From sequence record PP712906.1: a DNA stretch of 64,000 nt, one strand, 5' to 3'. Position 1 is the first letter of the stretch. Each line of letters starts with the position of its first letter. The position numbers and the translations under genes were made by a program. The notes below the pieces were generated by a model, which saw nothing but the letters and a program-made list of their open reading frames with translations, was not told where the DNA came from and did not search any database. Of this stretch, positions 8,053-50,613 are shown piece after piece.

Positions 8053-8319
8053 ATGCTAAAGTCTTTTATTGAAATATCACTGAACGAAATGACATACCAA
8101 GAGTTGCGTGATCTCACGATCAATGAGATTCACGCGCTCGTTAAGAAGCTGAAGAAACAGCTTCCGAAGAAGTACAAAGACATTATCGACGAACTAGAAC
8201 CAGACATGTATGAAGATCTGATTGCAGAAATCGCATATGATGGTGGGTTAAAAGGTAAGAAATTTGTCAACTTAAAAATCCCGAAGCGAATCTTAGATAG
8301 GTACGCTGACTACTTCTGA
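8053..8319 (+). CDS. small protein with capsid-targeting-like leader (candidate internal head protein)
   Basis: MLKSFIEISLNE leader; TATTAAATA late-like motif at 8026-8034. Confidence 0.6.
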   Translation: MLKSFIEISLNEMTYQELRDLTINEIHALVKKLKKQLPKKYKDIIDELEPDMYEDLIAEIAYDGGLKGKKFVNLKIPKRILDRYADYF

Positions 8320-8329
8320 GAGAAATATT

Positions 8330-8722
8330 ATGTTTGATGCTGCTAGTATGCGGGCCCGTTATAAGCCGAAACAACCGTCCGACCTTCAGATGCAGAAAAT
8401 CGAAGAATTTCAAGATTTTTTGTATAACACTCTGCAATCAATTGATAAAATAGCTGATACGGAACTTGAGATAAAAGTCGGCGTGAAAGCTGAATTTTAT
8501 GAATCAGCGGTTGTGCAATTTGAGAAATTAGGTTACAATATCAGAGCAGTGAAGAAGACATTCGATATTGAAAATCGAATCAATCCTCACGAGCCGCCAG
8601 AAATCGGTTACTTAAAGTACGAAACTCACAGTTTAGCACTTGCTTATGTGAATCGTATGTTGAGAGAACGCGGTTCTGAACACATGATATTGACGATAAT
8701 TGATTGGAGACGTAAGGCATGA
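8330..8722 (+). CDS. hypothetical protein (local paralog 2)
   Basis: AASMRAR...LGYNI...IIDW pattern. Confidence 0.65.
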   Translation: MFDAASMRARYKPKQPSDLQMQKIEEFQDFLYNTLQSIDKIADTELEIKVGVKAEFYESAVVQFEKLGYNIRAVKKTFDIENRINPHEPPEIGYLKYETHSLALAYVNRMLRERGSEHMILTIIDWRRKA

Positions 8723-8982
8723 TTATGAAAGCCGAAGAAGCACGAGCACGCAGCATCAAAGTAATGGAAGAGAAATTCCCAGTTGACGATCTGGAACATC
8801 TAGATGAGCGCATTGCACAAGCAACCGACGAAATGCGTTTTGGTATCAATATTCGAATTCGCGACGAAATGCCAGGTATCAATAGCCACAGTCTGAAACG
8901 ACTATTGATTGAATATCTGCGTTTGCACAATTACAACGCATTTTATGTTGATGACATCTTGGAGATTCGATGGCAAATTTAA
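8719..8982 (+). CDS. hypothetical protein (local paralog 3)
   Basis: AEEARAR...HNY...LEIRW pattern. Confidence 0.65.
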   Translation: MIMKAEEARARSIKVMEEKFPVDDLEHLDERIAQATDEMRFGINIRIRDEMPGINSHSLKRLLIEYLRLHNYNAFYVDDILEIRWQI

Positions 8983-9698
8983 AGGTTTATTACTGTAGTG
9001 ACATTCATAATGATTATCACGACGAAAACGCGCTAGAACGCATCACGGGCGACAAAGACGCTGTATTGGTAGTAGCAGGTGACATTAACAGCAAAGGGCG
9101 AACAGTGCGCGATTTAGAAGCTGTCGCCGACCGCTGGCGTGCTGTTATCGCAGTGCCGGGAAATCACGATTGGTGGGGTCTTGCGATTCACGAGCGACAC
9201 AAATTTGAAACTTCGGTTGACAATGTTCACGTATTGCTTGAAGATACAGTTCAGATTGACGACGTGACATTCTGCGAGACTACGCTGTGGCACGAAGTCA
9301 ATGACTGGTTTGAAGGTCAACGCTGGAAAGAAAACATGAACGACCGCCGTAAGATTCGCGGTCCTCAATGGCGACCTTTGTATGGTGAAGATGTTCACGC
9401 GCTTCATTGCCAATCAGTAAAATTTATCGAGAAATGTCGCGAGATTGAAGGTAAGAAAGTGTTAATAACACATCACGCCCCGTCTCTGAAGAGCATTTCA
9501 TCTTACTATGCGTACTCAAGTACGAATAGTTTTTATTGCACTGACCTTGAGCATTTGCTTGAAGGGTTCAACTTTGCAATTCACGGTCATGTTCATCAAG
9601 AATTTGACTATCACGTAAACGGCTGTAATGTACTGTGTAACCCACGTGCATACGGCTCAGAAAACCCAGATTATGGGCTTAGGATTTTCGACATATGA
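8970..9698 (+). CDS. calcineurin-like metallophosphoesterase
   Basis: SDIH, AGDI, PGNHD, ITHHAP, IHGHVH motifs. Confidence 0.93.
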   Translation: MANLKVYYCSDIHNDYHDENALERITGDKDAVLVVAGDINSKGRTVRDLEAVADRWRAVIAVPGNHDWWGLAIHERHKFETSVDNVHVLLEDTVQIDDVTFCETTLWHEVNDWFEGQRWKENMNDRRKIRGPQWRPLYGEDVHALHCQSVKFIEKCREIEGKKVLITHHAPSLKSISSYYAYSSTNSFYCTDLEHLLEGFNFAIHGHVHQEFDYHVNGCNVLCNPRAYGSENPDYGLRIFDI

Positions 9699-9883
9699 CT
9701 TTTTTTCTTGGTTACTTACTAATCGGTGCTTTGCTTACTATCGCTATCAACCCTCAATTGAGTAAGCACTTTAAGCAAATGGGTGGCGAAAGCATCATTC
9801 TTATGAATGTAGCATCGGTAGTACTGTCGCCGTTATTCGTAGTTATCCTGCTGATTAAAAAACTGTTTGGTAAACTAAAATAA
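9695..9883 (+). CDS. small membrane protein
   Basis: Two hydrophobic segments; ATGA coupling. Confidence 0.55.
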   Translation: MTFFLGYLLIGALLTIAINPQLSKHFKQMGGESIILMNVASVVLSPLFVVILLIKKLFGKLK

Positions 9884-9928
9884 CGTATTAAATACGTGCG
9901 TCTAATAATAACTTAAAAGGTAATACAA

Positions 9929-10174
9929 ATGACGCACGATTTGAATATGCTTCTTGAGCAGTACAACCTCGCGAATTACGATTGCGACGGTGATTTTGAA
10001 GACTATTACTGGTCGGTGGCAGAATGGATTGGTCAGACTGTCTTTAGTCACGGTACAATTCGTAAACACGATATTCTTGAACTGCTTTGCGATTTACTTG
10101 AAATATCTGAAGACCAAATCAACGTAGATGACGTTGACGATTTTCTAACCGAAGTTTATGAGGTGATTGAATAA
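9929..10174 (+). CDS. hypothetical acidic protein
   Basis: AAGG SD; acidic composition. Confidence 0.65.
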   Translation: MTHDLNMLLEQYNLANYDCDGDFEDYYWSVAEWIGQTVFSHGTIRKHDILELLCDLLEISEDQINVDDVDDFLTEVYEVIE

Positions 10175-10234
10175 TGAAGAAAATTCATCGTAAGGAGCTG
10201 TTTCACTGAGTAATTTAACTCGGAGAAACAGCAA

Positions 10235-13271: not shown

Positions 13272-13279
13272 TATAAATA
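13272..13279 (+). promoter_or_regulatory. T4-type late promoter
   Basis: Exact TATAAATA about 20 bp before the ATG at 13301. Confidence 0.85.
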
Positions 13280-13300: not shown

Positions 13301-14182
13301 ATGATTATATTCGAAGACATTAATCCGCTTTGTGAAGCATTTGACCGCCCAGCACCTTATAAATGGGATTCTATGTACAACGAAGCTCGATTTACGGTTG
13401 GGAACGTGCAGTATGTCGCGTTTATCAAAGATAATGACACAGCAAGAGGTTTAAGTCTGTATGTGGCATTTCAGCGTCGTGATAACGCAACTGGTCAATG
13501 GACTCACTCACTTGCTAAAGGCTCGCCGAAAGACGCAATGACGGTATTGAGCACAATACTGGCAGCAACATTTGACAAGGCATCAAAAGTTGAACCGAAT
13601 GAAATTACATTCAGTGCATTTCGTGACGCAGAGGACGAAGACGCAAATAAGCGTTTTAGACTGTACAAGCGTATGGCTGAGCGATACGCAAAGCAAATGA
13701 ATTACACAGTTCATATCACTGGTAATAGCTTCACACTAACAAACAACAATGCACCTAAGGTTAGACGACTTCACAATGACGGCATTCACAAAGATGATGA
13801 ACTTACATACGTAAATTTCCCTGCTTGTAATGCATTCACATGGGCGAAGCTTTTCTGGCTCGACAATGACGGCGATTACATCAAACTTACATTACCTCAC
13901 GGTCGTATTCACATTGTGAAAAAATCAAGTGACGTGATTGAAATCGAAGCAATCACACCGAAAGGTCGTTTTGACAATCTAGATTCAGATGAGATTTGGA
14001 TGTCGATGTTATCTGATATTAAAGTGAAAGCTAGAGGCGGAAGCACATTTACTATATCAGAGAAAGGCGCGATTTTAGATGCGGGTGATATGATTTTGTG
14101 TGAGCAAGGTACGTTTTATTACCTAAGTTCTGAAGATGATTTCAAAGAAATATGGGGATATGAAATCGTCTCGATTGAATAA
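13301..14182 (+). CDS. candidate internal head protein, paralog family member A
   Basis: Late promoter; LCE|AFDRP leader; core SLAKG..KDAMTV..ITFSAF..D..KRFRLYKRMAER shared with the ORF at 49762. Confidence 0.75.
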   Translation: MIIFEDINPLCEAFDRPAPYKWDSMYNEARFTVGNVQYVAFIKDNDTARGLSLYVAFQRRDNATGQWTHSLAKGSPKDAMTVLSTILAATFDKASKVEPNEITFSAFRDAEDEDANKRFRLYKRMAERYAKQMNYTVHITGNSFTLTNNNAPKVRRLHNDGIHKDDELTYVNFPACNAFTWAKLFWLDNDGDYIKLTLPHGRIHIVKKSSDVIEIEAITPKGRFDNLDSDEIWMSMLSDIKVKARGGSTFTISEKGAILDAGDMILCEQGTFYYLSSEDDFKEIWGYEIVSIE

Positions 14183-14212
14183 AAAAAAAGGGAGCAAATT
14201 GCTCCCTTTTTT
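14181..14212. terminator. bidirectional terminator
   Basis: A-tract GGGAGC-AAATT-GCTCCC T-tract between convergent genes. Confidence 0.85.
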
Positions 14213-14214: not shown

Positions 14215-15879
14215 TCATGGTGTTAGAGGACTACGCTCTTTAACCTTGCGTTCATCGTCGATGTCAATATCAACAACTCGCATGAAGTTAGCGACTTCGG
14301 TTAGCTCATGTAAACGGTCTTGCTTTTTGTAAGCAGACAGAACACCGATTTTCGCTGAATTGTCTTTGACTTTCAATCGAATCACCGCATCGAACTCAGA
14401 CAATTGAACCACGTCGGCTTCGAACATCGTATTACGGTTGATGATGAAATCACAATCGCCTTTCTTCCCGTATTTGCCTGGTGCTAGAACAGGTAACCCG
14501 TCAGACTCAATAACAAACACAACGTTCAGTTTTCTGTCAGATTCGAGCATATCACGCATAATTGATTTGCTATTCTTGCTCGTCGCGTTGACGATTGTTT
14601 TCGCGCTAGATTCAACAAAGTCACATGCAACAAATGGATCAGTTGATGATGTAATGAACGCAGTTGAAACGAACGCACCAGATTCAAGAATCGAGGCGAC
14701 ACGTTTGCTAGACATTTCACAACCACGATATAACGTAACGCCATTCGACACCTTACCAGCTTCATAGAAAGCTCGGTCTAAGCGAGAAATTGCATCCCTA
14801 ACCTTTTCATCACCAGTGCCGTGAACTAACTCTTCATTGACCTTCCACGAATAACGAGACGCAGAATAGCGAGAAATTGCAGCTTGGGTAAGAGAAGATA
14901 GACCAGCATATGAATCTTCTTGCATCATTTGCAACGATAATTGGTCATATTGCTTCTCAAACGCACGTGAGCGGGCTTTTAACAGTGCGGAGCATACTTC
15001 ACTAATCAAATTAGATTTAACGCCCTCTGAACGTGCTGAAGCGATATATGGGTTCATTCGTTCTGCTACATCAACAAGGTCGATGTTCATATCAACAATT
15101 GCTTGAGCAGCGTTAGCCAATTTCGTTAGACCGTCAGTTGCTGCCGCTTCGGTTAATTGCTGCTTGATAGATGCACTGACACGCGCTTCCATTTGTGGCA
15201 TTTGCAGAATTTGATTCGGGACGCGAACGGCAGGGTTTTCTTCTACCCATTGACCTAGAACATCATCTTCATAATCATCATAGCCAACATCGGCAGTCAC
15301 GATGATTGTTTTCTTGCTTGAAATGTCAGTCTCTTTCGCCATTTTAGCAGCAAGAATATTGATTGTTTCTTCGGTTGCTTCGACGAGTTTATCAGCGTCA
15401 TAGCCAGGTTTCGTGATCACGAAGAAGCTGAAATCTTCAGCCATTTCATTATCACCGACGTTCATGATTTTAGTCGTTTCGCAGCCGTATCGAAGTTTCT
15501 TGAACAGCGTTTTAACACGCATGTCGAACATTTTACCGCTACCGATCTTTTGAATACGCATAGACACAGCGTTGGCACGTGTTTTCAACATGAAACTTTG
15601 GATCAATTTAACCAATGTTTCTTGAAACTTTTCTTGGTCTCCCATGTCACGAATGGTTAATCCGCCTTTTTTGCCTCGCATTGCTGAGACAGTACAGAAC
15701 CACGAACGTTTTCCGCGATTTCCGATGTTTGATTTTGTTTTAGTTGTGAACGAAACTACAACGTCACGAGCTTCGCCTTTCATATCGATCACAAAGAATT
15801 TGTTTTCTTTGGTCGAGCGAGCCGGATAGTAGTCGTACGTTGCGCTCATGTTTTCAGTTAATTGTTGAAATCCAATCAT
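14215..15879 (-). CDS. alt: Alt-like ADP-ribosyltransferase
   Basis: C-terminal ART fold: TLYRG, TSST and a catalytic loop reading GDCDFII; MIGFQQLTE leader; late motif CATAAATA at 15912-15919 on the minus strand. Confidence 0.78.
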   Translation of the reverse strand: MIGFQQLTENMSATYDYYPARSTKENKFFVIDMKGEARDVVVSFTTKTKSNIGNRGKRSWFCTVSAMRGKKGGLTIRDMGDQEKFQETLVKLIQSFMLKTRANAVSMRIQKIGSGKMFDMRVKTLFKKLRYGCETTKIMNVGDNEMAEDFSFFVITKPGYDADKLVEATEETINILAAKMAKETDISSKKTIIVTADVGYDDYEDDVLGQWVEENPAVRVPNQILQMPQMEARVSASIKQQLTEAAATDGLTKLANAAQAIVDMNIDLVDVAERMNPYIASARSEGVKSNLISEVCSALLKARSRAFEKQYDQLSLQMMQEDSYAGLSSLTQAAISRYSASRYSWKVNEELVHGTGDEKVRDAISRLDRAFYEAGKVSNGVTLYRGCEMSSKRVASILESGAFVSTAFITSSTDPFVACDFVESSAKTIVNATSKNSKSIMRDMLESDRKLNVVFVIESDGLPVLAPGKYGKKGDCDFIINRNTMFEADVVQLSEFDAVIRLKVKDNSAKIGVLSAYKKQDRLHELTEVANFMRVVDIDIDDERKVKERSPLTP

Positions 15880-15960
15880 TTTATAGACTCACCCTTTAGA
15901 AAATATATGAGTATTTATGATGCACATAACACCCGTTGAAAATATTTTAAACTTTTTCGC

Positions 15961-16040
15961 AAAAAAGGTTGCACAACGATAATGTTATCTCCTATGATTA
16001 CTTCATCAAAACGAATTAACAAAAAGAGAGAACAATTATG
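15961..16040 (+). promoter_or_regulatory. early promoter cassette
   Basis: TTGCAC 15969-15974, TATGAT 15993-15998, CATCAAAACGA box, AAGAGAG SD. Confidence 0.75.
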
Positions 16041-16541
16041 AATGCACAATCAATGACTAACGCTCAAATCGCTGAACTATTCGACATGACAGTTGACGCA
16101 AACGGTTTTCAAGCAGTTGATGCGAAAGGTCGTCGTCATTACCTGACCGACTTACGTCAAAAAGCAATGAAAGCTGCTAAGACGAAGAAAGCACGTAAAG
16201 TACGCGCTGAAGCACAACCTAAAGCAACTGCCGAAGAACTACTTGCAGAACTACAAAGCGAGTCGTCAGATTTCTGGGAAATTCGCGAATCTCAGCCAGG
16301 GATGGACTCTGAAGAACACGGTCTGAACGTGTACGTGACTGCTGGTCTGCCTGATCGTCACCGCGTAATGATTCGCTCAAGTGTTTTGACAAACAAAGAG
16401 CTTGAACGCGAACTCGGCTACTTGAAGCCTACAAATCAGAAAGAAGAACAGCGTCGCAACAAATCGACAATTATCTTCTCTAATCGTTCAGCGAAAGAAA
16501 TCGTTGAAATCATTGAAAAAGTGAAGTCAATTAGTGAATAA
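16038..16541 (+). CDS. hypothetical early protein
   Basis: Behind the promoter cassette; codon usage looks like highly expressed genes. Confidence 0.8.
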   Translation: MNAQSMTNAQIAELFDMTVDANGFQAVDAKGRRHYLTDLRQKAMKAAKTKKARKVRAEAQPKATAEELLAELQSESSDFWEIRESQPGMDSEEHGLNVYVTAGLPDRHRVMIRSSVLTNKELERELGYLKPTNQKEEQRRNKSTIIFSNRSAKEIVEIIEKVKSISE

Positions 16542-16652
16542 TGTGAAATAAATCACGAAAAAGTAGTTTTCGGGTATTGACAATAACACATCAATACCCG
16601 ATAATAAACACATCAAGACGAGATACGAACTACTTAAAGAGAGAACATTATG
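16542..16652 (+). promoter_or_regulatory. early promoter with an upstream CRP-like site
   Basis: TGTGA-N6-TCACG 16542-16557; TTGACA 16577-16582; GATAAT 16600-16605; CATCAAGACGA 16611-16621. Confidence 0.7.
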
Positions 16653-17474
16653 ACAATCACTAAAGCAGAAATGAAAGCAATCGCACTTGATCTAATGAGC
16701 GGTAACAATCTAATGCAACGCGATTTGATTGCTGAAGGTTGGTCTTTCGAATTCTCAACTCGCAAAGCTGCACTTGGTGACTGTAACTACCGTACTAAAG
16801 TACTACGTCTTTCTGAAGTGTACTTGAATGCTCGTACTAAAGAAGAGCAAATCAACACAATCACTCACGAAATGGCTCACGCAATCGCGTACACTGATTT
16901 CAACGAACGTGGTCATGGTGCTATCTGGAAGCGTGTGCATCGTCAACTAGGCGGTACTGCTGAACGTTGTTCAACTGTTTCAAACCCTGAAGCCGTAGAC
17001 AGCAAGTACGTTGTTTTCTTCGAAAACGCTCAGGGTGAACTAGAAGTAGTTCAAAAAATGGATCGCATGACTAAGCGTTTTCAACCAGTACACATCAAGT
17101 CTCTATACTTGAAAGGTCGCAAAGCTGAAACTGAAGGTCAACTTCGTTGTGTTTCTTCAGCGACGTTCAAAGCTATCAAAGCTGATTTAGAAGCTAAAAA
17201 AGCTGATAACGCTGAAGCAGCAAAACCAGTTGAACCAGTTGCACCTAAAGCTAAGAAAACTGAAACACCTAAGCCTGCTAAGAAAGTTTCAGCACGCGGT
17301 CAAGCTGCTCGTGACGCAATCGCAGAAATCGTGATGACTACTACTCACAAAGGTTGCAAGTCAGTGTCTTTCGAACAGCGTGGTAAATACAAAGACTGGT
17401 ACATCATGATTGAACTAGAAGCTCACACAATCGAACAGCGTCTAGATACTTTCAAAAAGAAACACAGTTTGTAA
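16650..17474 (+). CDS. SprT-like zinc metalloprotease
   Basis: LGDCNY..LRLS..TITHEMAHA..GHGAIWK; Pro/Lys-rich linker and a small C-terminal domain. Confidence 0.88.
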   Translation: MTITKAEMKAIALDLMSGNNLMQRDLIAEGWSFEFSTRKAALGDCNYRTKVLRLSEVYLNARTKEEQINTITHEMAHAIAYTDFNERGHGAIWKRVHRQLGGTAERCSTVSNPEAVDSKYVVFFENAQGELEVVQKMDRMTKRFQPVHIKSLYLKGRKAETEGQLRCVSSATFKAIKADLEAKKADNAEAAKPVEPVAPKAKKTETPKPAKKVSARGQAARDAIAEIVMTTTHKGCKSVSFEQRGKYKDWYIMIELEAHTIEQRLDTFKKKHSL

Positions 17475-17580: not shown

Positions 17581-17631
17581 TTTGTTTAACAAACACCTTG
17601 ACAGCCGTATAATACACGTCGAGGTGATGAA

Positions 17632-17871
17632 ATGATAACGATATACACAATTCCTAACTGTGACGGTTGTCGTCACGCTATCGCCCTCTGTAAGTTCAAA
17701 CACGTTCCGTATACTGTAATCGAGTTACAGTCGCAGACTGACATCGACCAATTACATCAAAAGCTTGGTGATAATCGCAACATTCGCGTTCCTCTTGCTA
17801 TGCATGGTGACACATACATCGGTCACCTGCCTGAATTGAAGAAATGGGTTGATGAACAGACGTATAAATAA
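17632..17871 (+). CDS. glutaredoxin-like protein
   Basis: ITIYTIPNCDGC CxxC motif, VP motif, YIG. Confidence 0.9.
   Translation: MITIYTIPNCDGCRHAIALCKFKHVPYTVIELQSQTDIDQLHQKLGDNRNIRVPLAMHGDTYIGHLPELKKWVDEQTYK
17863..17870 (+). promoter_or_regulatory. T4-type late promoter
   Basis: Exact TATAAATA upstream of the capsid-like gene. Confidence 0.85.
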
Positions 17872-19356: not shown

Positions 19357-20802
19357 ATGTTAGGTAACTTTGACTCATTTCTGAGTGAAAATCGCCGTCA
19401 AACTCAGGGTGGAAAAATCTACCCTAAGTTTGGTCAAGTTATTGTTGAGCTAGGCACTGCATCTACTGAGTTCAGCAAAGCCAAAGGCGTTGAAACAACT
19501 ATCGGCATGATGGAGAAGGCAAATGAGCTTAAATCTATCATGAACACTAAACTGGCTGAAGATAAAAACGTCGATGAGAAACATTTCGACATCAATCTGA
19601 GCGAGAACGTAAGCACGGTTAACCTGCTTATGGAAAACGAATTCTTGGCGCTGCCAGCTCATGAGCTACAGCAAGTCAAATCAATGATCATGTGTACTGA
19701 AGCACGTCTTCCTAGCATCGTGATTAAAGGTGGTTCATTGGATCAAGTTGTTGCTGAAGCAACGAAACTAGGCTACAAGAAAAGTGACATTCACGTTGTT
19801 TTCCCGATGCGTGAAATGAAAATCAATCTTGCTGACTCTGACAAGCTTGTTATTGAATCTCTATCAATTGACGACAATTCAGCGTCTGAGATTCTTTCAA
19901 TGGCTGAAAACATCGAGCTTGGTGACGTTTATGTGACTGTAGAATCGGTTGATTCTAAGGCTGAACTGTCTGAAATCACTGAACTGAAGATTAAATCTGG
20001 TAAAAATGCGCTGACACTAGCTGCACTTAACCGCAAGATCATGGATCAGTTTATCGTGAAAGAAGCGAAAGAAGTTTCATATGCACGTGAGCGCAAAGAA
20101 GACACTGGTCTCCCAATGCTTGAAGGGTTCAAGGCATACGATCTGAAACAGAACATCACCATGATTGAACATGCTCAGAACGCATTCACAAAAGAGATTA
20201 CAGTAGCTCCGCTATCTTCGACTGCGTGGCAAAATCTTGTTGATGTTAAAGAAGCTTACTTCGATAACGGTTGGAAACTGAAGCACAACAATACAAGCAT
20301 CGTTCTAACAAACGCTGAACACGCAATGCGTGCTGGTCGTGTTTGTGAAGAATATCGAGTCGAGCTATCTGAAGCAGGTTATCCTCTTCTTGATATGATC
20401 GCAATGATGGAAAGCAAAGGCATGACTCGCTTTGATTGTAAATCATTTGCTGAAGCAATGATGAAATTCGACGGCTGTGTTACGCCAGAGCGCCAGACTG
20501 TGACTGCATTTGTTACTGAATCTGCTAGTAATCGCGTATTTCACCCGAATATTATGTCAAGCCTACGTCCTGTGACCGAAATGGTTGATGATGTTGACAG
20601 TCTAATTCGTGCGCTTGCTAATGATCAGTTCAGCACGTTCAAAATCGGACAATCATTCTCTGAATCAATGCTTGACCAAGAAACGCTATACTCTATGATG
20701 GAAAGCATTGTTTCTGATGGTGTTGATGTATCAGTGGACGGGACTTTGATTGAATTCAAAGTGAATGCAACCAATTACCTAATCAATATCGACATAAAAT
20801 AA
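19357..20802 (+). CDS. hypothetical protein with capsid-targeting-like leader
   Basis: 481-aa ORF; MLGNFDSFLSE leader; AGGA SD. Confidence 0.8.
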   Translation: MLGNFDSFLSENRRQTQGGKIYPKFGQVIVELGTASTEFSKAKGVETTIGMMEKANELKSIMNTKLAEDKNVDEKHFDINLSENVSTVNLLMENEFLALPAHELQQVKSMIMCTEARLPSIVIKGGSLDQVVAEATKLGYKKSDIHVVFPMREMKINLADSDKLVIESLSIDDNSASEILSMAENIELGDVYVTVESVDSKAELSEITELKIKSGKNALTLAALNRKIMDQFIVKEAKEVSYARERKEDTGLPMLEGFKAYDLKQNITMIEHAQNAFTKEITVAPLSSTAWQNLVDVKEAYFDNGWKLKHNNTSIVLTNAEHAMRAGRVCEEYRVELSEAGYPLLDMIAMMESKGMTRFDCKSFAEAMMKFDGCVTPERQTVTAFVTESASNRVFHPNIMSSLRPVTEMVDDVDSLIRALANDQFSTFKIGQSFSESMLDQETLYSMMESIVSDGVDVSVDGTLIEFKVNATNYLINIDIK

Positions 20803-30483: not shown

Positions 30484-31110
30484 TCACTTAGACTTGCAAT
30501 TGTCAAAGTGGTGACGAGTCATTGCACCGCCCTTTTTGCCTTGCTTTCCGCAATGCGGGCACGTGACAACGGGGAGATTCAAAAGAGCCTCGCGTATTTT
30601 CTGCGAGTGTTCTTTTGATTTCGAGACACCTTTTCGTGATTTTGACATTTTTTCTTTTGTTGTATCACTAGTGGGTTCTCTATTCTCCCATGCCTTTTTA
30701 AGGTTTTCACGATGTTCTTCGCTGAATGGGGCACGTTTGATACCTGTCAGTGTTTGAGAAATGGCTTTTGCATGAGCTTCACGTGCATAACGATAGCTGT
30801 GCGAATTGTGTCGATTATCGTTGGCTAGTCGATGCCACGCATGTGCCATTTTGTTATTGTTATAAATTTTAAACAGGAGCCAGTGGACTAAGAAGTGTTC
30901 TCTTGCAGTGAGTACTACAAGATTACTCTTTTCTTCTGAATCCATGTCAAATACGTATTCATCACGTTCTATACTCTTGGTATATCTACACATAGACTTA
31001 GGTAATATGTGATGGAGTTCTACGTAGACTGGTGCAGTTGACTTCGTCCACGCTCTTTCGACTGCTCGATTTATAATTTCGTCGTGTATTCTTTTGTAAT
31101 TCATATGCAT
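30484..31110 (-). mobile_element. free-standing HNH homing endonuclease (Mob-like)
   Basis: ELHHILPKS..NLVVLTAREHFLVH; NUMOD3-like repeats; C-terminal CPHC; TATAAATA on the minus strand at about 31129-31136. Confidence 0.88.
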
Positions 31111-37212: not shown

Positions 37213-38370
37213 ATGAACGAACTTATTGATGCAACAAACGAAGCGCGTACGCAATACGAGCAGTATGGTGCATGTAGTGCTTTTCAAATCGAAGGTCTAC
37301 TTACTGAACTCGAAAAGCACGCTTCTGACAACGCTGTTGTGAAGTCTGCACGAACTGAGTTCGACGATTACGAGAATTTGACTGGTACACGTATTGATCA
37401 ACTACTGACAGTCGCTGAAGTCACCATCTTTAAAACAAGTGAGAAAAACTTAATGAAACTGATTGTAACAGTCGGTGTGCCTGCGTCCGGCAAAACTACG
37501 TGGGCTGAGAAATTCTGTGCAAACGGAAAAGCAGTAAATGTCAATCGCGACGATACTCGTCAAGAACTGTTCGGTCCCTTCAAGTGGGGCGAATACAGCT
37601 TCAAGAAGCAGAACGAAGAACTTGTGACGAAAGTCAACAAAGACAAAGCTATGCTTGCCCTACGTTCTGGTAAAGACGTTGTAATCTCTGATACTAACCT
37701 TGTGCCAGAGCGTCGTGAAGAGTGGCGTAATATCGCTAAACAGCTTGGTGCTGAATACGAAGAGAAGTTGTTTCATATCTCTTTCGATGAAGCATTTGCA
37801 CGCGATAAAGCTCGTGAAATGTCAGTTGGTGGTAAAGTTCTAACAACTATGTTCCAGAACTACCACCGAAACAACCGTGATTTGATTATCGCGCACTTCA
37901 AATCACTGCTTGAGCCTCTTTGGGAAGCTGGTACTGAGTTGTGTGTATTGTCTGACATCGACGGCACAGTTGCTGAAATGCACAAAGGTGTTAAAGGTCG
38001 TCGTAGCCCATTTGAATGGCTACGTGTTGAAGAAGACTCACCGCGTGACACTGTAATCGAAATGCTAGATCTTCTGAGCGCCCACTATCCAATCATTTTC
38101 ATGAGCGGTCGTGATGGTGTTTGTGAAGAGCATACACGCCGTTGGCTATTGAAGCATATGCCATTCGCGTATTCAAGTGGGTTTGACTTGGTCATGCGTG
38201 GTAAAGGCGATTCACGCCCAGACTGGGTAATCAAACTAGAATTGCTACTAGAATTAGCAAAACGTGGTTATCGTCGTCCTATCGTGATGTTCGATGACCG
38301 TGATCAAGTAGTCAATACTCTACGTGAAGTAGGTGTTGAAGTGTTCCAAGTACAACCGGGTAACTTTTAA
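37213..38370 (+). CDS. pseT: polynucleotide 5'-kinase/3'-phosphatase with an N-terminal extension
   Basis: GVPASGKTT, NRDD, ISDTNL; HAD motif DIDGT, MSGR, MFDDR. Confidence 0.95.
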   Translation: MNELIDATNEARTQYEQYGACSAFQIEGLLTELEKHASDNAVVKSARTEFDDYENLTGTRIDQLLTVAEVTIFKTSEKNLMKLIVTVGVPASGKTTWAEKFCANGKAVNVNRDDTRQELFGPFKWGEYSFKKQNEELVTKVNKDKAMLALRSGKDVVISDTNLVPERREEWRNIAKQLGAEYEEKLFHISFDEAFARDKAREMSVGGKVLTTMFQNYHRNNRDLIIAHFKSLLEPLWEAGTELCVLSDIDGTVAEMHKGVKGRRSPFEWLRVEEDSPRDTVIEMLDLLSAHYPIIFMSGRDGVCEEHTRRWLLKHMPFAYSSGFDLVMRGKGDSRPDWVIKLELLLELAKRGYRRPIVMFDDRDQVVNTLREVGVEVFQVQPGNF

Positions 38371-40422: not shown

Positions 40423-40424
40423 CA

Positions 40425-40451
40425 AAATCCCGTCTTAATGGCGGGATTTTT
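40425..40451 (+). terminator. rho-independent terminator
   Basis: AAAATCCCG-TCTTAATGG-CGGGATTTTT. Confidence 0.75.
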
Positions 40452-40494
40452 AGTTTTCATCTAAATAGAAGAAACAACACAAAAAGGTATCATA

Positions 40495-41949
40495 ATGAAA
40501 CTGTTTACTGAATTTTATCAAGAAGTTCGACTTGACGAAATCTCAGATCGTGCGAATATCGACATTGATTGGGATTGGGGTCATGAGAACGGTACGGGAG
40601 AAACTTCGGCGAGATTTGACGCAGCCGGTGAGAAATTCCAAGTTAGCGTTGACGAGAGCAACCCGGGTTATTTCACAATCACATTCCAGAACTCTAGTGG
40701 TTATTCTCAGACTGGTAGAGCGGGACACTCTGCGGCTGCTGTATTCTCTGGCGTATTGACGACTTTACGTGAATTCACCGAAACGTACGAAGAAGAAATG
40801 GGCATGAAACCATATGAATATGACTTCAGCGCAGCGTACGAACTACCGAGAAATCACGACTATTACTCGTTGGTTCACAATCGTCGCGAGGCAACTCGTT
40901 TAGATGAAGAAAGCAAGAAAAAGCTATTGAAAGACTTGATTTCTCGCCCTATGCTTTACTACGCACTATCGTTGACGTTTGGTAAAGAATACGGCTATTC
41001 AACTGAAATTAGCGACCGTTGGCTTGCTCGTCTTGCAGGGGGCGCGAATGATTTCCGTTCCGTTCGTAAGAACGTGACTCGAAGCATTCTGTCGATGAAT
41101 GACAACGACGTTAACCAAGCGTTGATGAACATGAGCGGTTCTGTTTCGTTCACTCTTACCAACGAAAACGAACGTCCTAGCAGCTACGACACAGCATTCG
41201 GTGGCGGTCCGTCTCTTGAAGACTACGTTGATGAAGCAGACCAGTACCAAATCGAAGCGTGGATCAATGATGGTCGTGAAGATGAAATCATCGAACATGC
41301 TGATTGGCAAACTCTAGTTCGCATTGCGGAATGGGGTCTGATGCACGATGAACTGATTTTCCATGATGATGAAGACGTTCGAAACGCGGTAATCCGCACA
41401 GACTACGAAATGGGCGAGAAACTAGCCGAATCGCCTGAGTGGGAACATCGTAAACAAGCTGCTGAAAATGGTTTTGGCATTTGGGATCTTGTTCTTGACT
41501 CTGACGAAGACGTGCGCGAAGCTGCATGGGACTGGTCGTTTGAAAATGACGATGCTGATACTCGAATCACATACGCGAAACGCTACGAAGGCAACTTCGG
41601 TCGCGCAATGGCTGAAGACGTGTGGGATCGCATGATCGACGATTCAGATGACTATGAAGAGCGTCAATACGTAGCTGAACAAGGTTATCGTCTTGAAGAA
41701 CTTCTAGCAGACCATGACGAAGACGTGCGTTCTTCTGCAATCAATGCTGTATTCACGGTAATGGGTCTGGATGGTCGAGAAGCGGCTGAGTTCTTGATGG
41801 AAAACTCTGAACCTTACCAAGAAGAAGTGTTTGAATACGCGATTAACGGTAACTTCGGTCCATCTTTCGATGAAGCACTAATCGAAATTGCTGAAGAAAA
41901 CGGCGTTGATGTTTCTGAGTACAAAGAAGACGAAGACGAAGACGAATAA
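40495..41949 (+). CDS. very acidic HEAT/LRV-repeat protein with capsid-targeting-like leader (paralog family member B)
   Basis: MKLFTEFYQEVRLDE leader; CTAAATA at 40461-40467; three units ending DEDVR. Confidence 0.82.
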   Translation: MKLFTEFYQEVRLDEISDRANIDIDWDWGHENGTGETSARFDAAGEKFQVSVDESNPGYFTITFQNSSGYSQTGRAGHSAAAVFSGVLTTLREFTETYEEEMGMKPYEYDFSAAYELPRNHDYYSLVHNRREATRLDEESKKKLLKDLISRPMLYYALSLTFGKEYGYSTEISDRWLARLAGGANDFRSVRKNVTRSILSMNDNDVNQALMNMSGSVSFTLTNENERPSSYDTAFGGGPSLEDYVDEADQYQIEAWINDGREDEIIEHADWQTLVRIAEWGLMHDELIFHDDEDVRNAVIRTDYEMGEKLAESPEWEHRKQAAENGFGIWDLVLDSDEDVREAAWDWSFENDDADTRITYAKRYEGNFGRAMAEDVWDRMIDDSDDYEERQYVAEQGYRLEELLADHDEDVRSSAINAVFTVMGLDGREAAEFLMENSEPYQEEVFEYAINGNFGPSFDEALIEIAEENGVDVSEYKEDEDEDE

Positions 41950-41952: not shown

Positions 41953-42020
41953 AAAAAGGGTTGACAGATGTCAGCCCTTTCGTGTATTCTACGTATAAGA
42001 AATCAACGGAGAGTAATATG
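41953..42020 (+). promoter_or_regulatory. early promoter within a terminator hairpin
   Basis: AAGGG-TTGACA-GA-TGTCAG-CCCTT hairpin; TATTCT at 41985-41990. Confidence 0.7.
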
Positions 42021-44254: not shown

Positions 44255-44278
44255 AAAGAGGGGCATTCGCCCCTTTTT
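44253..44278. terminator. bidirectional terminator
   Basis: AAAAAGAGGGGC-ATTC-GCCCCTTTTT between convergent genes. Confidence 0.8.
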
Positions 44279-45332
44279 ATGGTCTGTAGATCATGTGATT
44301 TGAACCCATTCGTTCCCATGTACCTAGATTCATGCGATTTTTCATTTCAGCGAAGAATGCTGGGTTTGCTCTAATGTCATCAAGTGGCAGTGCAACAACA
44401 CCTTCAGTTTTATGCGCCAATAGCTCTAGTTTATCAAGCAAATCAGACGTTGTACGACCGTCATATTTGAATTGACTGAACCAATAACCAATCTTACTGA
44501 ATTTCGTATCTCTTGTGTATTTCACATCAAAGCCTTTCAGAGCATACGCTAAGTTACTTTCTTTACCGTGAAACGGCTTGCGATATGCGCTATGTTCAGC
44601 ACCAGCACGAGCAAGCAATCTCTTCTTAGCTGCGTCTGGTAGATTGAACCACCCATCAAAGTTTTTCTTGAAGTTCAACATCCATGCTTCTGGCGTAGCC
44701 GGTGAGCCTTTGAAGTATGCTTTCGTATCAGCAATGGCTTGTGCATAGCGTGCGTTAATCTCATGAGAATAGTTCTGATATTCGTCGTGAGACGCTTCGT
44801 GACCGCTTTTAGCGTGACGGATGAACTCTTTATCAATGTATCCGCGTTTACGCCCTGAGTGTTGATACACGCCCTCTGCGTCGCTTGTCTCGAAGTCTTC
44901 AATGTCACCAGAACGATAGTTGTCGTAAGCGTGTTGCAGTTCATGTAATGCCGTGCTATACAACTGTGGCTTCTGCAATCTGAATTTCGCCATGATTTGA
45001 CTAACTGCTGTTACTCCAGTTATATCCACGACAAGCTTGAGATACCCTGCTTCTGTGATCGAGTCGTCATGTAATTTGCCATTCCAAACACCGAGTTCGG
45101 TTGGGTTATTATTGTCTAACTTCAGATATGCTAGAATACCTTCAGCTAGTAATGCATCGAACTCACTCTCACCAGTTCTGATATTCAGAGTTTTTGTGTT
45201 GACGGATAGTTTATTTGGATCCCATGGTGCTTTACTTAGAGCGCCTTCTAACTGGCGTTCCAATGTATCGACGATGGTTTTTGACGCTTGTTCTAATGCG
45301 CGTTGTGATTGTACGTTTTCAAAAATAATCAT
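44277..45332 (-). CDS. HExxH zinc metallopeptidase-like protein with a late promoter
   Basis: TALHELQHAYD; MIIFENVQSQRALE leader; CTAAATA on the minus strand at 45365-45371. Confidence 0.78.
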   Translation of the reverse strand: MIIFENVQSQRALEQASKTIVDTLERQLEGALSKAPWDPNKLSVNTKTLNIRTGESEFDALLAEGILAYLKLDNNNPTELGVWNGKLHDDSITEAGYLKLVVDITGVTAVSQIMAKFRLQKPQLYSTALHELQHAYDNYRSGDIEDFETSDAEGVYQHSGRKRGYIDKEFIRHAKSGHEASHDEYQNYSHEINARYAQAIADTKAYFKGSPATPEAWMLNFKKNFDGWFNLPDAAKKRLLARAGAEHSAYRKPFHGKESNLAYALKGFDVKYTRDTKFSKIGYWFSQFKYDGRTTSDLLDKLELLAHKTEGVVALPLDDIRANPAFFAEMKNRMNLGTWERMGSNHMIYRP

Positions 45333-45350: not shown

Positions 45351-45412
45351 TTGACTGTATTACTTATTTAGGTTAATATCTCTCTCATCGAAACGAAAGA
45401 GAGAACATTATG
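45351..45412 (+). promoter_or_regulatory. early promoter cassette with a nested divergent late promoter
   Basis: TTGACT 45351-45356, 17 bp spacer, TAATAT 45374-45379, CATCGAAACGA 45386-45396. Confidence 0.8.
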
Positions 45413-47750: not shown

Positions 47751-47939
47751 ATGATGCGTAGGCATGAAATTCAAGAACTAGTTGAGCGTCGCGGGTTTGA
47801 ATTTCGCGAAGCAATCAATGAATACAGCGAATCACGTTGGCAAGTCATCGACAATGGTACAGTGGTCTACGAATCATACAATGAATACTGCATTGAAGCA
47901 TTCTTGCTTGGCGTAGATTACATCACAGACGCAATTTAA
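47751..47939 (+). CDS. hypothetical protein
   Basis: GAGG SD; followed by a terminator at 47939-47959. Confidence 0.6.
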   Translation: MMRRHEIQELVERRGFEFREAINEYSESRWQVIDNGTVVYESYNEYCIEAFLLGVDYITDAI

Positions 47940-47968
47940 GCCGCATTTCGCGGCTTTTTGAGGTTCAT

Positions 47969-48271: not shown

Positions 48272-48545
48272 CATTGCTCATCATTCTTTTGATGTGTACA
48301 TTGGTCGCGGCACACCGTTCGGAAATCCATTCAAAGCAGGGATCGACGGCACTCGGAGCGAAGTTATTGAGCTTTATCGAGAGTGGTTGCGCATTCAATT
48401 ACAAGACGACGAATTTAAAAAGCAGTTTATGCAACTAAAAGGAAAGATTCTCGGCTGTCATTGTAAGCCAAAAGCGTGCCATGGCGATGTAATTCTCGAA
48501 GAACTTGATAGATTGAGCAGCCCACTAAACAATTTTATAGGTTAA
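48261..48545 (+). CDS. DUF4326-family protein
   Basis: DVYIGRGTPFGNPF..LKGKILGCHCKPKACHGDVI. Confidence 0.88.
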   Translation: MIVNIAHHSFDVYIGRGTPFGNPFKAGIDGTRSEVIELYREWLRIQLQDDEFKKQFMQLKGKILGCHCKPKACHGDVILEELDRLSSPLNNFIG

Positions 48546-48548
48546 TCT

Positions 48549-48842
48549 ATGAGAGAAGCAATTGCATTATTAAGCAACACGAGAATGGGATATACTGACA
48601 TTAGCGCATTTGGCGATCCAGTATTATATGTTCATGCGGGACATGAGACGGTATTAAAAGTGCAATACACTGAAGATTGCTACTCATTTTACGACTACAG
48701 AAGCAAGTATCTTTATACAGAGCAGTCCATCGACGACTTAGAGATACATTTGAAATCAATAGATGTCGGGCTAGACGATGATCTACCGTTAAATGGTAAC
48801 ATCGACAAAGACACAATACCAGACGGGGAATTTTTAGAATGA
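48549..48842 (+). CDS. hypothetical protein
   Basis: ORF leading into the paralog pair. Confidence 0.6.
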   Translation: MREAIALLSNTRMGYTDISAFGDPVLYVHAGHETVLKVQYTEDCYSFYDYRSKYLYTEQSIDDLEIHLKSIDVGLDDDLPLNGNIDKDTIPDGEFLE

Positions 48843-49759
48843 AGTTTAGTGAATATCAAAGAATAAACGAATCTCTAGATCGCCCTGGCAATTATAAACT
48901 GGTTAGAGAACTCCCGAACTTAAACGTGTATGCGTTTCAAGTTGATGGTGTTTATTATGAAATAGACATTCAGAAATCAAACATACGAGAGCCTAATGGG
49001 ATGCAGTCAATGAAAGCTGAAGTCTCATTCAAAGCACTCGACGGTAGTGGTTATCAACTAACCAAAAAAGACGATAAAACGGCACGAATTGTACTATCAA
49101 CCGTAGTTGATGCTATCTTCAGCTTCGTACGCGAATACAATCCCGCTCAAATATTATATTCCGCATTCAACGATGCTGATCCGTCAGATGCTGCTAAACG
49201 ACTTCGTTTATATCAGATCATGACTAAAGCAAAACTGCGTGAATTCCCCGAATATGATTTCCGAAACGTTGGGCGAGATTTCATCGTCTACGATGTCAAT
49301 TACCAACAACGAGTCGAGGAATTTTCAAGAAGAGCACGTCGACCAGTGGGGTATGAAGAAAGATCAGACCACGTTGAAGTGAATTTATCACACGCCAACG
49401 CTTTTGCGTTTATACGGGCGTTTGGGGTAAATGATGGCGACTCAAAGAGCGGCGTACTAGGTAAAGGTCGAGCTTTCGTAGGCGCAACAAACGAAATTAA
49501 AGCACGTCTAAGAGTAGATCGTGTGGTGTATGAAATGTCTGATAGAGAAGGATGGCTTGCGGCTCTTCAGCACCCTATTTTTGACTATGGCGAGGGTCCT
49601 GAAGTTGATCGAACATATCTAGTCGGGGCATTTAAAAACTTCTATATCGTGTTGACTAGTCAAACAAGTCTAAAAATATACACCGATGATGCTGCGTTTA
49701 CAAAATATGTGAATGCTTTCGACGCGCCATGGTTAAACCCAGAAATAATGGAATCTTAA
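48839..49759 (+). CDS. candidate internal head protein, paralog family member C
   Basis: MKFSEYQRINE|SLDRP leader; ILYSAFNDADPSDAAKRLRLY core. Confidence 0.78.
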   Translation: MKFSEYQRINESLDRPGNYKLVRELPNLNVYAFQVDGVYYEIDIQKSNIREPNGMQSMKAEVSFKALDGSGYQLTKKDDKTARIVLSTVVDAIFSFVREYNPAQILYSAFNDADPSDAAKRLRLYQIMTKAKLREFPEYDFRNVGRDFIVYDVNYQQRVEEFSRRARRPVGYEERSDHVEVNLSHANAFAFIRAFGVNDGDSKSGVLGKGRAFVGATNEIKARLRVDRVVYEMSDREGWLAALQHPIFDYGEGPEVDRTYLVGAFKNFYIVLTSQTSLKIYTDDAAFTKYVNAFDAPWLNPEIMES

Positions 49760-49761
49760 AA

Positions 49762-50613
49762 ATGAAATTTAGCGAATATCAAAACGAGCTAACGGAAGCA
49801 TTTGATCGACCTGCACAGATCACAGCACGTCGTGGCAATCAGAGTTTTTTCATGATTGGTGACACTGAGTACATGGTCGGGTTGTATTACGACGACTCGA
49901 AAAAATCACTCGGAGTTGACTTCATGCATAAACCGGGCGATTCAGCAACGTACTACTACAGCTTAGCCAAAGGCAACTCAAAAGACGCAATGACTGTTTT
50001 TGCCACAGTGATTGCAGAAATCAAGCGGCTTATGAAAGACAACCCGGTAAATAAAATCAGCTTTAGCGCGTTTCAAGACTCTGATAGCTCAGATGCTAAA
50101 AAGCGTTTCCGTTTGTACAAGCGTATGGCAGAACGTTTCAGCAAAGAGCTTGGGTTCAGAATGACCACGTATGGCGATTCTTTCACCATGACACGTATAA
50201 ATCCTGTTGCAGTCAATGTAGAAGAGCCAACTGGTTATGATACAGCGTGGGGTACTGAAATGCTCGATCTGTATGAAGTCAACGACGCTGCAATTGCCAA
50301 AGTCACAGAAGGTGATGGTGAATGGCGTTTGAATAACTGGAACAAGCTGATTGTTCGCAACGGTAAAGTAACACTAACATCGGGTCCAATTCGAATGTCA
50401 GACGCTTGGTACGATGCGTTTTACGACTTAGAATGGTATCACGATGAAGAAGGCGAACAATGGTTCGATGATGAACAGAAGATCGCGATCATCAATGGTA
50501 AAGTTTGGGTCATCCACGACATGGAAATTACTATTTGGCCAAGTATTGAGAAATTAGAATTGCAAAGTGACTCGGAATTATCAAGCGGGACACGTCAATT
50601 GCTCGGATATTAA
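49762..50613 (+). CDS. candidate internal head protein, paralog family member D
   Basis: MKFSEYQNELTE|AFDRP leader; core closely matches the ORF at 13301. Confidence 0.78.
   Translation: MKFSEYQNELTEAFDRPAQITARRGNQSFFMIGDTEYMVGLYYDDSKKSLGVDFMHKPGDSATYYYSLAKGNSKDAMTVFATVIAEIKRLMKDNPVNKISFSAFQDSDSSDAKKRFRLYKRMAERFSKELGFRMTTYGDSFTMTRINPVAVNVEEPTGYDTAWGTEMLDLYEVNDAAIAKVTEGDGEWRLNNWNKLIVRNGKVTLTSGPIRMSDAWYDAFYDLEWYHDEEGEQWFDDEQKIAIINGKVWVIHDMEITIWPSIEKLELQSDSELSSGTRQLLGY

Follow-up and report, generated by a model that had tools for sequence, protein, structure and literature searches.

Whether a T4-like phage distant from the T-even group loads enzymes into its head and delivers them with its DNA is the question raised by a 64,000-nucleotide (nt) stretch of a Vibrio phage genome, referred to here as the window. 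The window is identical to positions 181586-245585 of PP712906.1 and forms the final part of the record of Vibrio phage TCU-VP03-AIR1, a Schizotequatrovirus and KVP40-like relative of T4 that is 98.5% identical to KVP40. Its annotation consists mostly of early and middle genes (topoisomerase, ligase, gp47/46/45/44/62, regA, gp43, rnlA and pseT), with gp24 and gp55 embedded among them. An original prediction had picked out nine dispersed open reading frames (ORFs) in this region that begin with a short leader ending in (L/I)xE, taken to be cleavable by the prohead protease gp21, and had proposed that their products are packaged in the capsid and injected. All nine are present with the N-termini quoted for them, and each corresponds to an annotated coding sequence. 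On the comparative evidence set out below, we estimate a probability of roughly 55% that the products of most of the nine genes are packaged in the head by the T4-type route.

In T4-like phages, a short N-terminal sequence that is cut by gp21 directs a variety of proteins into the head, and ip genes have been recognised by this targeting sequence since 1994, their products Ip1-3 inhibiting different GmrSD enzymes (PMC9026906, PMC12373910, PMC3012670). The mechanism suggested for the nine proteins is thus a known one, since the T4 targeting-sequence/gp21 route has already been described. TCU-VP03-AIR1 encodes a T4-type protease gp21, the N-terminus of which can be aligned with that of T4, and the scaffold core components gp22, gp67 and gp68. 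The head block, comprising portal, gp67-like, gp68-like, gp21, gp22 and gp23 genes, lies at 139-144.5 kb of PP712906.1 (annotated 140751-144543). Within gp23, the site LNE-62 followed by Ala aligns with LTE-65 followed by Ala in T4 gp23, whose propeptide is 65 residues long (PMC9026906). In the proposed scheme, each candidate would be made with an N-terminal propeptide of 5-15 residues that combines a hydrophobic/aromatic head with an (L/I)xE tail. The propeptide would dock the protein onto the scaffolding core (gp22/gp67/gp68) during prohead formation, gp21 would cut after the Glu, and the mature protein would remain beside the DNA in the head until infection, when it would be expelled into the cell. 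Targeting, cleavage, virion retention and ejection are predicted by analogy with T4, and so would be any role in takeover or counter-defence before phage transcription begins.

The nine candidates are listed below with their leaders and predicted mature starts, and are referred to by start coordinate or by protein name. Genome-wide counts are based on our own ORF call (384 ORFs in the whole genome, 104 of them in the window), and T4 sequence was taken from NC_000866.

8053-8319 (+): phrog_14461 protein, 88 amino acids (aa), leader MLKSFIEISLNE, predicted mature start MTYQELRDL (from orthologues of four phages)
13301-14182 (+): paralogue 1 of phrog_6387, 293 aa, leader MIIFEDINPLCE, predicted mature start AFDRPAPYKW
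14215-15879 (-): Alt-like ADP-ribosyltransferase (ART), 554 aa, leader MIGFQQLTE, located near the DNA ligase gene, as in T4
19357-20802 (+): phrog_14490 protein, 481 aa, leader MLGNFDSFLSE
20811-21458 (+): protein with a predicted class I S-adenosylmethionine (SAM)-dependent methyltransferase fold, 215 aa, leader MKQFCNFLAE, predicted mature start VQKYSSAATS
40495-41949 (+): acidic protein (isoelectric point, pI, 4.2), 484 aa, leader MKLFTEFYQEVRLDE, predicted mature start ISDRANIDIDW
44277-45332 (-): HELQH protein with a zincin-like motif (the HExxH protein), 351 aa, leader MIIFE, predicted mature start NVQSQRALE (from family comparison)
48839-49759 (+): paralogue 2 of phrog_6387, 306 aa, leader MKFSEYQRINE
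49762-50613 (+): paralogue 3 of phrog_6387, 283 aa, leader MKFSEYQNELTE

The Alt-like protein provides the most direct connection to a protein of the T4 head. It belongs to PHROG 802 (E = 2.6e-88), and when a profile of the protein and three orthologues was compared by hhalign with a profile of T4 Alt and ten diverse relatives, the two matched with a probability of 99.9 (E = 1.9e-34) over 493 columns. These results bear out the ART label that the gene had been given. Since the match begins at residue 4, LTE-9 of the Alt-like protein falls on ITE-6 of T4 Alt. T4 Alt is packaged in approximately 40 copies, cut at ITE-6 and LTE-619, and ejected (PMC5694885; packaging also PMC9026906). The L-x-E of the Alt-like leader is kept in four phages, and 17 of 18 representatives of the Alt family carry the motif with Glu at positions 5-11, the leaders differing in length. 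The family alignment has 14 invariant columns, which include the Glu of the cut site as well as catalytic residues. The Alt family served as a positive control, showing how a processed N-terminus appears when sequences are compared. On profile comparison, the product of 14215-15879(-) is a full-length T4 Alt homologue with both N-terminal and ART domains. Within the R-S-E signature, the LYRG and S-x-S regions align with the Alt family. The second Glu of the E-x-E element (T4 E576) is Asp in TCU-VP03-AIR1 and KVP40 (D-C-D, residues 475-477), and the same column holds Glu in nt-1, 6E35.1a, 1.081.O and four other relatives. Because of this Asp, the KVP40 species may have an ART of altered or reduced activity. 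Sequence searches of PDB and Pfam with the Alt-like protein, as a single sequence or as a four-sequence profile, returned nothing significant.

The Alt-like gene adjoins an Alc-like 'inhibitor of host transcription' gene (16038-16541, +) and a gene for an SprT-like metallopeptidase (16650-17474, +), the latter with a good sigma-70-like promoter at 16577-16605. Positions 16038-17474 thus form a small neighbourhood of host-takeover functions, and both the Alc-like and the SprT-like gene lack a leader and a late core.

Three further candidates, 13301, 48839 and 49762, belong to a single family, phrog_6387. Among 14 sequences of this family (23-72% identical, in three paralogue groups), the junction Glu is invariant, and Leu or Ile stands two residues earlier in all 14. 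The stretch between the invariant head of the leader, MIIFE or MKFSEY, and this junction is fully different from sequence to sequence or deleted; where it is deleted, the I-F-E of MIIFE directly abuts the conserved mature start AF(D/S/T)RP. An AlphaFold2 model of 13301 has a predicted local distance difference test (pLDDT) score of 83, with residues 1-13 below 50 and the ordered part beginning right after the junction. When this model was searched against BFVD viral structures, it matched Alt-type ARTs of several T-even-like phages (E ~2e-4 to 2e-3) and also large multidomain phage proteins. The family profile matched that of the Alt family in hhalign (E = 1.8e-5, 96 columns) with the cut sites aligned, and a hidden Markov model (HMM) of the N-terminal 160 residues of the Alt family matched 49762 (E = 3.4e-5 within the TCU-VP03-AIR1 proteome). 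An HMM of the phrog_6387 N-domain additionally found a fourth copy at residues 164-304 of the protein encoded outside the window at 149795-150757(-) of PP712906.1 (E = 2.5e-12). Together, the fold, profile and HMM matches indicate that 13301, 48839 and 49762 contain the N-terminal domain of Alt as their base and lack the ART domain, and homology of the three paralogues to that domain is supported by sequence comparison.

The link between the 13301 family and Alt appeared only against the broader Alt family. A direct profile comparison of the 13301 family with the Alt-like protein of TCU-VP03-AIR1 was not significant and aligned only the leaders. A PDB fold search with the 13301 model gave no significant match either, the best weak one being to the DNase-I-like subdomain of RNase E (E = 0.04). 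For the third paralogue, an alternative ATG at 49729 would give an ORF (49729-50613) that overlaps the end of 48839-49759; both paralogues and orthologues favour the annotated start at 49762 (MKFSEYQ...).

The HExxH protein carries its junction at a position other than the one initially assigned. The quoted leader ended in A-L-E, at residue 14, and was the only one of the nine that did not end in (L/I)xE. Leaders in 18 relatives are 5, 5, 8, 11, 11-15, 15 and 24 residues long, and in each case [LI]xE closes the leader and abuts a conserved (N/S/T)(V/Y/F)xSQ(R/K)xLE sequence, which means that the leader had been misplaced. The real junction is IFE-5, after MIIFE, and with this change an (L/I)xE propeptide is present in nine of nine candidates. 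MIIFE is the same pentapeptide that heads the 13301 group. The motif HE(L/M)QH is present in 18 of 18 family members, and this invariant motif is the one feature behind the metallopeptidase label given to the protein; Pfam and PDB searches, with a single sequence or a four-sequence profile, gave no significant match.

The methyltransferase 20811 extends the pattern to a protein family of considerable breadth. A total of 232 homologues were found, mostly metagenomic and many with Pfam PF13489; the metagenomic contigs are mostly marine, and among isolated phages the family occurs only in Vibrio T4-like phages. The AlphaFold2 model has a pLDDT of 90 overall and adopts a class I SAM methyltransferase fold. 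Against PDB it gave 297 matches at E <= 0.001, the top 50 being SAM methyltransferases with template modelling (TM) scores of ~0.35-0.57, and D46 and the G-x-G-x-x-G residues are invariant across 69 homologues. The predicted fold thus supports the methyltransferase label. Sequence searches of PDB and Pfam with 20811, as a single sequence or as a four-sequence profile, yielded nothing significant. Confidence in the model falls at the N-terminus, where residues 1-8 and 16-19 have pLDDT values below 50 and the means are 43 for residues 1-10 and 50 for residues 11-20. In both modelled proteins (20811 and 13301), the leader therefore lies outside the confidently folded part. Across the family, a linker that varies in length separates the leader from the conserved core. 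The bare motif [LI].E, with Glu at positions 6-13, is carried by 58 of 99 distant homologues (<=48% identity), compared with a background of 13% of TCU-VP03-AIR1 N-termini. This corresponds to a 4.4-fold enrichment, with p ~5e-26 if homologues are treated as independent, a value that is an upper bound on the evidence. Many leaders of the family resemble the leader of T4 internal proteins (IPs), the typical form being M-K/R-hydrophobic-x-acidic-hydrophobic-hydrophobic-x-E. As to genomic context, one homologue contig has an rIIA-like gene nearby, and on another a short stretch of the gene preceding that for the methyltransferase matches 149795-150757(-); neither observation is decisive.

The remaining three candidates are 40495, 8053 and 19357. 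The product of 40495 has one Pfam match, to HEAT, at 24.9 bits against a cut-off of 23.5, and its orthologue in 1.081.O is annotated as armadillo-like; the repeat-protein label is upheld by this one match above the Pfam cut-off. In four phages its leaders are 15-19 aa long, and the junctions read LDE, LDE, LDE and IFE before the conserved ISDRAN. Only KVP40 and VH7D were found as relatives of 40495 in IMG/VR. The product of 8053, with a predicted mature form of 9 kDa and pI 7.9, is the most IP-like of the candidates in size. Across four phages its leader is 9-14 aa long and has a conserved head, M(L/H)KSFIE, followed by a middle that varies; the first ATG of the gene has a strong Shine-Dalgarno sequence ahead of it. 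For 19357, family and PDB searches with a single sequence or a four-sequence profile gave no match, and the gene has no promoter of its own.

Evidence of a different kind comes from transcription signals. The following promoter and terminator features accompany the candidate genes.

8027-8034 (+): late-promoter-like core ATTAAATA, 26 nt upstream of ORF 8053; kept in the nt-1, 6E35.1a and 1.081.O orthologues
13272-13279 (+): canonical late promoter TATAAATA, just after a terminator hairpin and 29 nt upstream of 13301; kept in four phages
14184-14212 (strand not assigned): bidirectional terminator hairpin, common to the convergent 13301 (+) and Alt-like gene (-)
15912-15919 (-): late-promoter-like core CATAAATA, 40 nt upstream of the Alt-like gene; identical in four phages
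17863-17870 (+): late promoter TATAAATA, heading the run gp24-gp55-19357-20811
40424-40467 (+): terminator hairpin (40424-40450) followed by late core TCTAAATA (40460-40467), upstream of 40495
41955-41980: terminator after 40495
44259-44274 (-): terminator directly after the stop of the HExxH gene
45365-45372 (-): late-promoter-like core CCTAAATA, 40 nt upstream of the HExxH gene; its NCTAAATA core is kept in four phages
50616-50641: terminator after 49762

Five of the candidates had been described as lying directly behind a late promoter. All five do have a NNTAAATA core 26-40 nt upstream, and it is kept in the nt-1, 6E35.1a and 1.081.O orthologues of each; only one is an exact TATAAATA, and the CATAAATA core of the Alt-like gene does not match the '(C/T)TAAATA' form that had been quoted. 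The exact TATAAATA occurs in 16 copies in the genome, about the number expected by chance, yet for 12 of them a gene begins 10-60 nt downstream. The TAAATA core, as NNTAAATA, precedes 43 of 384 genes at a distance of ~10-60 nt, and most of the genes for head, tail and baseplate are among them. As this is about ten times the ~1% expected from its genome-wide frequency, the relaxed core is credible in TCU-VP03-AIR1. An upstream late core is present for 17 of the 62 motif-bearing ORFs of the genome and for 24 of the 322 others (Fisher p = 3e-5). Four of the candidates (13301, the Alt-like gene, 40495 and 44277-45332(-)) form insulated units, with a late core upstream and a terminator after the stop, and for 13301 and 40495 a terminator hairpin also stands ahead of the late core. 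The late promoter that had been placed at 17863 is confirmed as TATAAATA upstream of gp24, and 19357 and 20811 follow gp24/gp55 downstream of it with gaps of 8-10 nt.

The leader motif taken by itself carries little weight. With Glu at positions 7-16, the bare motif [LI].E occurs in 62 of 384 ORFs genome-wide (16%) and in 19 of 104 in the window, against a background of 11.9% of ten-residue windows inside proteins. Nine such ORFs in 64 kb are thus about what chance would produce, and (L/I)xE alone, on which the original selection had been made, does not discriminate. A composite leader pattern (aromatic residue at positions 3-5, hydrophobic residue three residues on, then [LI].E) was built from the published roles of residues in the T4 IPIII leader, in which targeting relies on aromatic or hydrophobic residues at positions 4 and 7 and processing on residues 8 and 10 (PMC9026906). 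This pattern matches 20 of 384 ORFs (5.2%) in TCU-VP03-AIR1, where 5.5 would be expected from internal windows; the matches include DNA polymerase, the clamp loader gp62 and thymidylate synthase. In a control on 100 kb of T4 (144 genes), it matches 11 proteins, of which three are the IPs and one is the head-associated gp2. We know of no evidence that the 7 others (4.9%), among them lysozyme, RNA ligase and thymidylate synthase, are present in the head.

More informative is what happens at the junction when sequences diverge. In a side-by-side check of the motif-bearing ORFs of the region, non-candidates with diverged flanks (7820, 16038, 21553 and 43634) mostly lose the motif, whereas candidates retain it despite diverged flanks, although the numbers are small. 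When all 384 N-termini were ranked blind against the first ten residues of T4 IPI and IPII, 20811 came first (score 21) and 40495 second (score 20). Among the other leaders, those of 19357 and 8053 resemble the T4 IP leader partially, with a one-residue shift, and MIIFE, MIGFQQLTE and MKFSEY are of a different type. The real signal is the association of leaders with late cores together with family-level conservation of the motif exactly at the junction with the mature protein, as seen in the Alt-N, HExxH and methyltransferase families. For annotation, the lesson is that (L/I)xE alone is useless as a predictor; what informs is whether a family keeps it fixed where a variable leader gives way to the conserved mature N-terminus.

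Several results weigh against packaging of the nine proteins. The composite pattern was dropped as evidence: its false-positive rate in T4, ~5%, equals its match rate in TCU-VP03-AIR1, so an N-terminal pattern alone proves nothing. Length variability of the N-terminus was likewise rejected as a criterion, given that ~21 of 44 orthologue sets of the region vary. The likeness of 20811 and 40495 to the T4 leader is of modest significance, since 0.39 scores of at least 20 would be expected by chance among 384 N-termini and the probability of two or more is ~0.04. In two candidates the motif itself is not firm: the residue two before the junction Glu of 8053 is Leu, Leu, Phe or Met, so that (L/I)xE is not strictly kept, and the N-terminus of 19357 is conserved throughout without insertions or deletions, with the junction Glu replaced by Ala in 1.081.O. 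Timing is a further difficulty. Because gp55 is needed before late transcription, the run that includes 19357 and 20811 cannot be purely late, and a good sigma-70-like promoter (17586-17613) does lie upstream of nrdH in the same run. No late core was found near 48839 and 49762, which stand near the end of a long plus-strand gene run starting at 45410. The T4 ip genes themselves have no TATAAATA within 70 nt, and the missing late core does not disqualify these two. The predicted mature forms, at 9-61 kDa and mostly neutral or acidic (pI 4.2-9.1), differ from T4 IPs, which are 8-20 kDa with pI 9-9.7. Finally, no virion proteome or N-terminal sequence of KVP40, nt-1, phi-pp2, ValKK3, PVA8 or relatives was found in the literature that was searched.

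These points bear on three other ways of accounting for the leaders. The proteins, apart from Alt, may be intracellular and never enter the head, their leaders being ordinary N-termini that happen to fit a loose pattern. The frequency of the bare motif, the ~5% of composite matches in T4, the composite matches to DNA polymerase, gp62 and thymidylate synthase in TCU-VP03-AIR1 and the commonness of N-terminal indels all fit such a view, and for 19357, 8053 and possibly others it may well be true. As an explanation of the set it is unlikely. The Glu, with Leu or Ile two residues before it, persists at the junction even where the neighbouring residues have diverged or been lost, and the motif is 4.4 times as frequent in the methyltransferase family as in the background. 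Four proteins show homology to T4 Alt at its processed N-terminus, and the late cores are conserved. The same conserved junction stands in the way of the idea that the products are late cytoplasmic enzymes or factors, modifying progeny DNA or protein or shutting down the host late, with an N-terminal segment that serves folding, regulation or turnover. Late promoters would suit any late function, and spanin and homing-endonuclease genes in the window carry a late core too; the same timing would be expected of a methyltransferase that acted on progeny DNA or virion proteins, and the C-terminal position of the Alt-N-like domain in 149795-150757(-), at residues 164-304, indicates that this domain is not itself a positional signal. 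Such a role would leave unexplained why an L/I-preceded Glu is fixed exactly at the leader-mature boundary in unrelated families, why leaders resemble the T4 IP leader and why AlphaFold2 puts both modelled leaders outside the fold, and we consider it improbable.

It is also conceivable that the proteins do enter the prohead and are cut by gp21 but are accessory core or assembly parts, fragmented or expelled before DNA packaging in the manner of gp22/gp67/gp68. Most T4 core proteins are cut and then leave the head (PMC9026906). The start of the gp68-like protein of TCU-VP03-AIR1, MKFISE, is similar to the MKFSEY leaders; several candidates share an acidic character with scaffold proteins, and candidates contain further internal [LI].E sites, of which the Alt-like protein has eight. 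Yet enzyme folds (methyltransferase, ART, HExxH) would be unexpected in scaffold parts, the genes are dispersed away from the head-gene block, and T4 Alt, a homologue of one candidate and a partial homologue of three, is retained and ejected (PMC9026906, PMC5694885), which together make a purely structural role distinctly unlikely. We therefore favour packaging of most of the nine proteins by the T4-type route, with a strength that differs from protein to protein. Homology makes a gp21-type leader and packaging very likely for the Alt-like protein and the three Alt-N paralogues. Comparative sequence evidence makes them likely for the HExxH protein and the methyltransferase, and also for 40495, where the support is fair. 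Packaging of 8053, whose leader is moderately supported, is possible, and that of 19357, with a weakly supported leader, is doubtful.

The nine genes do not make up a complete set, and further candidates were found both inside and outside the window.

PP712906.1 150760-151353 (-): basic protein of 197 aa (MIEFLTE...), its gene preceded by a terminator hairpin and TCTAAATA and lying immediately past the head block
PP712906.1 149795-150757 (-): 320-aa basic protein (MSIIFE...) with an Alt-N-like domain at 164-304, just beyond the head block
Window 9929-10174 (+): 81-aa ORF with a late core kept in four phages and a conserved LLE-10 (from orthologues)
Window 47751-47939 (+): 62-aa ORF in which I/L-x-E at position 9 is kept in three orthologues despite diverged flanks
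PP712906.1 8057-8308 (+), outside the window: ORF with a leader-like N-terminus (MQGFNDYF...) and late core TATAAATA at -33
PP712906.1 74015-75133 (+), outside the window: ORF with a leader-like N-terminus (MKNLKSFMEELQSLNE...) and late core CATAAATA at -29

The proteins encoded at 149795-150757(-) and 150760-151353(-) look more like classical internal proteins than do the nine.

Other features of the window lie apart from the candidates. A 7-deazaguanine (queuosine-precursor) synthesis gene set occupies 54197-58002 (+) and comprises the following genes.

54197/54308-55684 (+): transglycosylase-like gene
55714-56622 (+): QueF
56678-57394 (+): QueC
57394-58002 (+): further ORF

Queuosine-precursor gene sets have been linked to deazaguanine modification of phage DNA, and this one provides background for the restriction systems that injected proteins might have to face. 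A homing endonuclease gene (30484-31104, -) lies between regA and the gene preceding DNA polymerase; an exact TATAAATA (31136) stands immediately upstream of it, and in KVP40 the position is without a gene. In addition, pseT is a single 385-aa ORF at 37213-38370 (+), where KVP40 annotates two genes instead, a short 'beta-lactamase domain protein' and pseT.

Injected head proteins act ahead of any phage gene expression. In T4 they decide survival versus restriction, as with Ip1-3 against GmrSD variants, and Alt reprogrammes RNA polymerase; the repertoire of injected proteins outside T-even phages is almost unknown. A description of the targeting-sequence route in the KVP40 group was not found in a literature search that did not include the 2003 KVP40 genome paper. 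Nor were descriptions found of the methyltransferase family, the HExxH family, the HEAT-repeat protein or the four-member Alt-N family as cargo types, or of the width of the leader-bearing methyltransferase family. We tentatively suggest, as a broader possibility about which we are less confident, that the heads of KVP40-like phages, and of many uncultured marine relatives, are loaded with individual enzymes in place of small basic inhibitors. Among these would be SAM methyltransferases, the HExxH family and several Alt-N proteins, each behind a short, fast-evolving (L/I)xE propeptide, and the Alt-N domain would serve as a reusable building block, copied and fused to new C-terminal effector domains. 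If this is true, the methyltransferase family (>200 members, mostly leader-bearing) would be the first widespread enzyme family predicted to use the T4 targeting-sequence route. Confirmation in particles would mean that the T4 leader-protease route carries enzymes, namely a methyltransferase and a zincin-like protein, and diversified Alt-domain proteins in a distant branch of T4-like marine vibriophages that is ecologically important, and would provide a concrete short list for studies of host takeover in the first minute of infection.

Among known systems, the internal proteins of T4 are one point of comparison. Like them, the candidates have a short N-terminal leader ending in (L/I)xE, in a phage that has the same protease and scaffold set. 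The leaders of 20811 and 40495 share Met1, Lys2, an aromatic residue at position 4, Phe7 and Glu10 with those of the T4 IPs, and 20811 has L-A-E where IPII and IPIII have I-A-E. The cargo proteins are non-homologous and share the leader only, as is also true of Ip1-3 (PMC12373910). However, T4 IPI-III have no sequence homology to the candidates. The predicted cargo of TCU-VP03-AIR1 is 9-61 kDa, mostly neutral or acidic, and has enzyme folds, and its genes are dispersed, several of them in insulated late units, whereas the T4 ip genes lie in hotspots.

T4 Alt is another. The gene at 14215-15879(-) encodes its full-length homologue, with the N-terminal cut site aligned, and like T4 alt has the DNA ligase gene in its vicinity. 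In T4, the TATAAATA of alt comes immediately after a terminator hairpin; the Alt-like gene has a late core upstream and a terminator after its stop. The duplication of the first part of alt in T4 alt.-1/alt.-2 is resembled by 13301, 48839 and 49762, which have the Alt N-domain and mature start. The Alt-like protein is nevertheless shorter than T4 Alt (554 versus 682 aa) and only ~23% identical to it in the ART domain, and no conserved counterpart of the C-terminal LTE-619 has been established in it. The paralogues differ further from T4 Alt in lacking the ART domain and in having another C-terminal domain, without a PDB match.

Enzymes carried in the head and delivered with the DNA are also known from the polyvalent, or Dar-type, virion proteins (Iyer et al. 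2017), represented by DarA, DarB and DdrB of P1, which include methyltransferase, metallopeptidase and ART domains (PMC5512222). The kinds of enzymatic domain are the same, and the BFVD matches of 13301 included large multidomain phage proteins. Unlike the polyvalent proteins, the candidates are separate single-function proteins with their own leaders rather than giant fusions or MuF/portal attachments, and they are predicted to be packaged via the T4 targeting-sequence/gp21 route. In phiKZ and SPN3US, a protease homologous to gp21 cleaves many proteins of the inner head behind a short x-x-E motif, and there are paralogue families with identical propeptides (PMC5694885). The propeptides of these phages are much longer, their motif is AxE or SxE and their genome organisation is unrelated. 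Their virion proteomes have been measured; the cargo of TCU-VP03-AIR1 is predicted from its genes.

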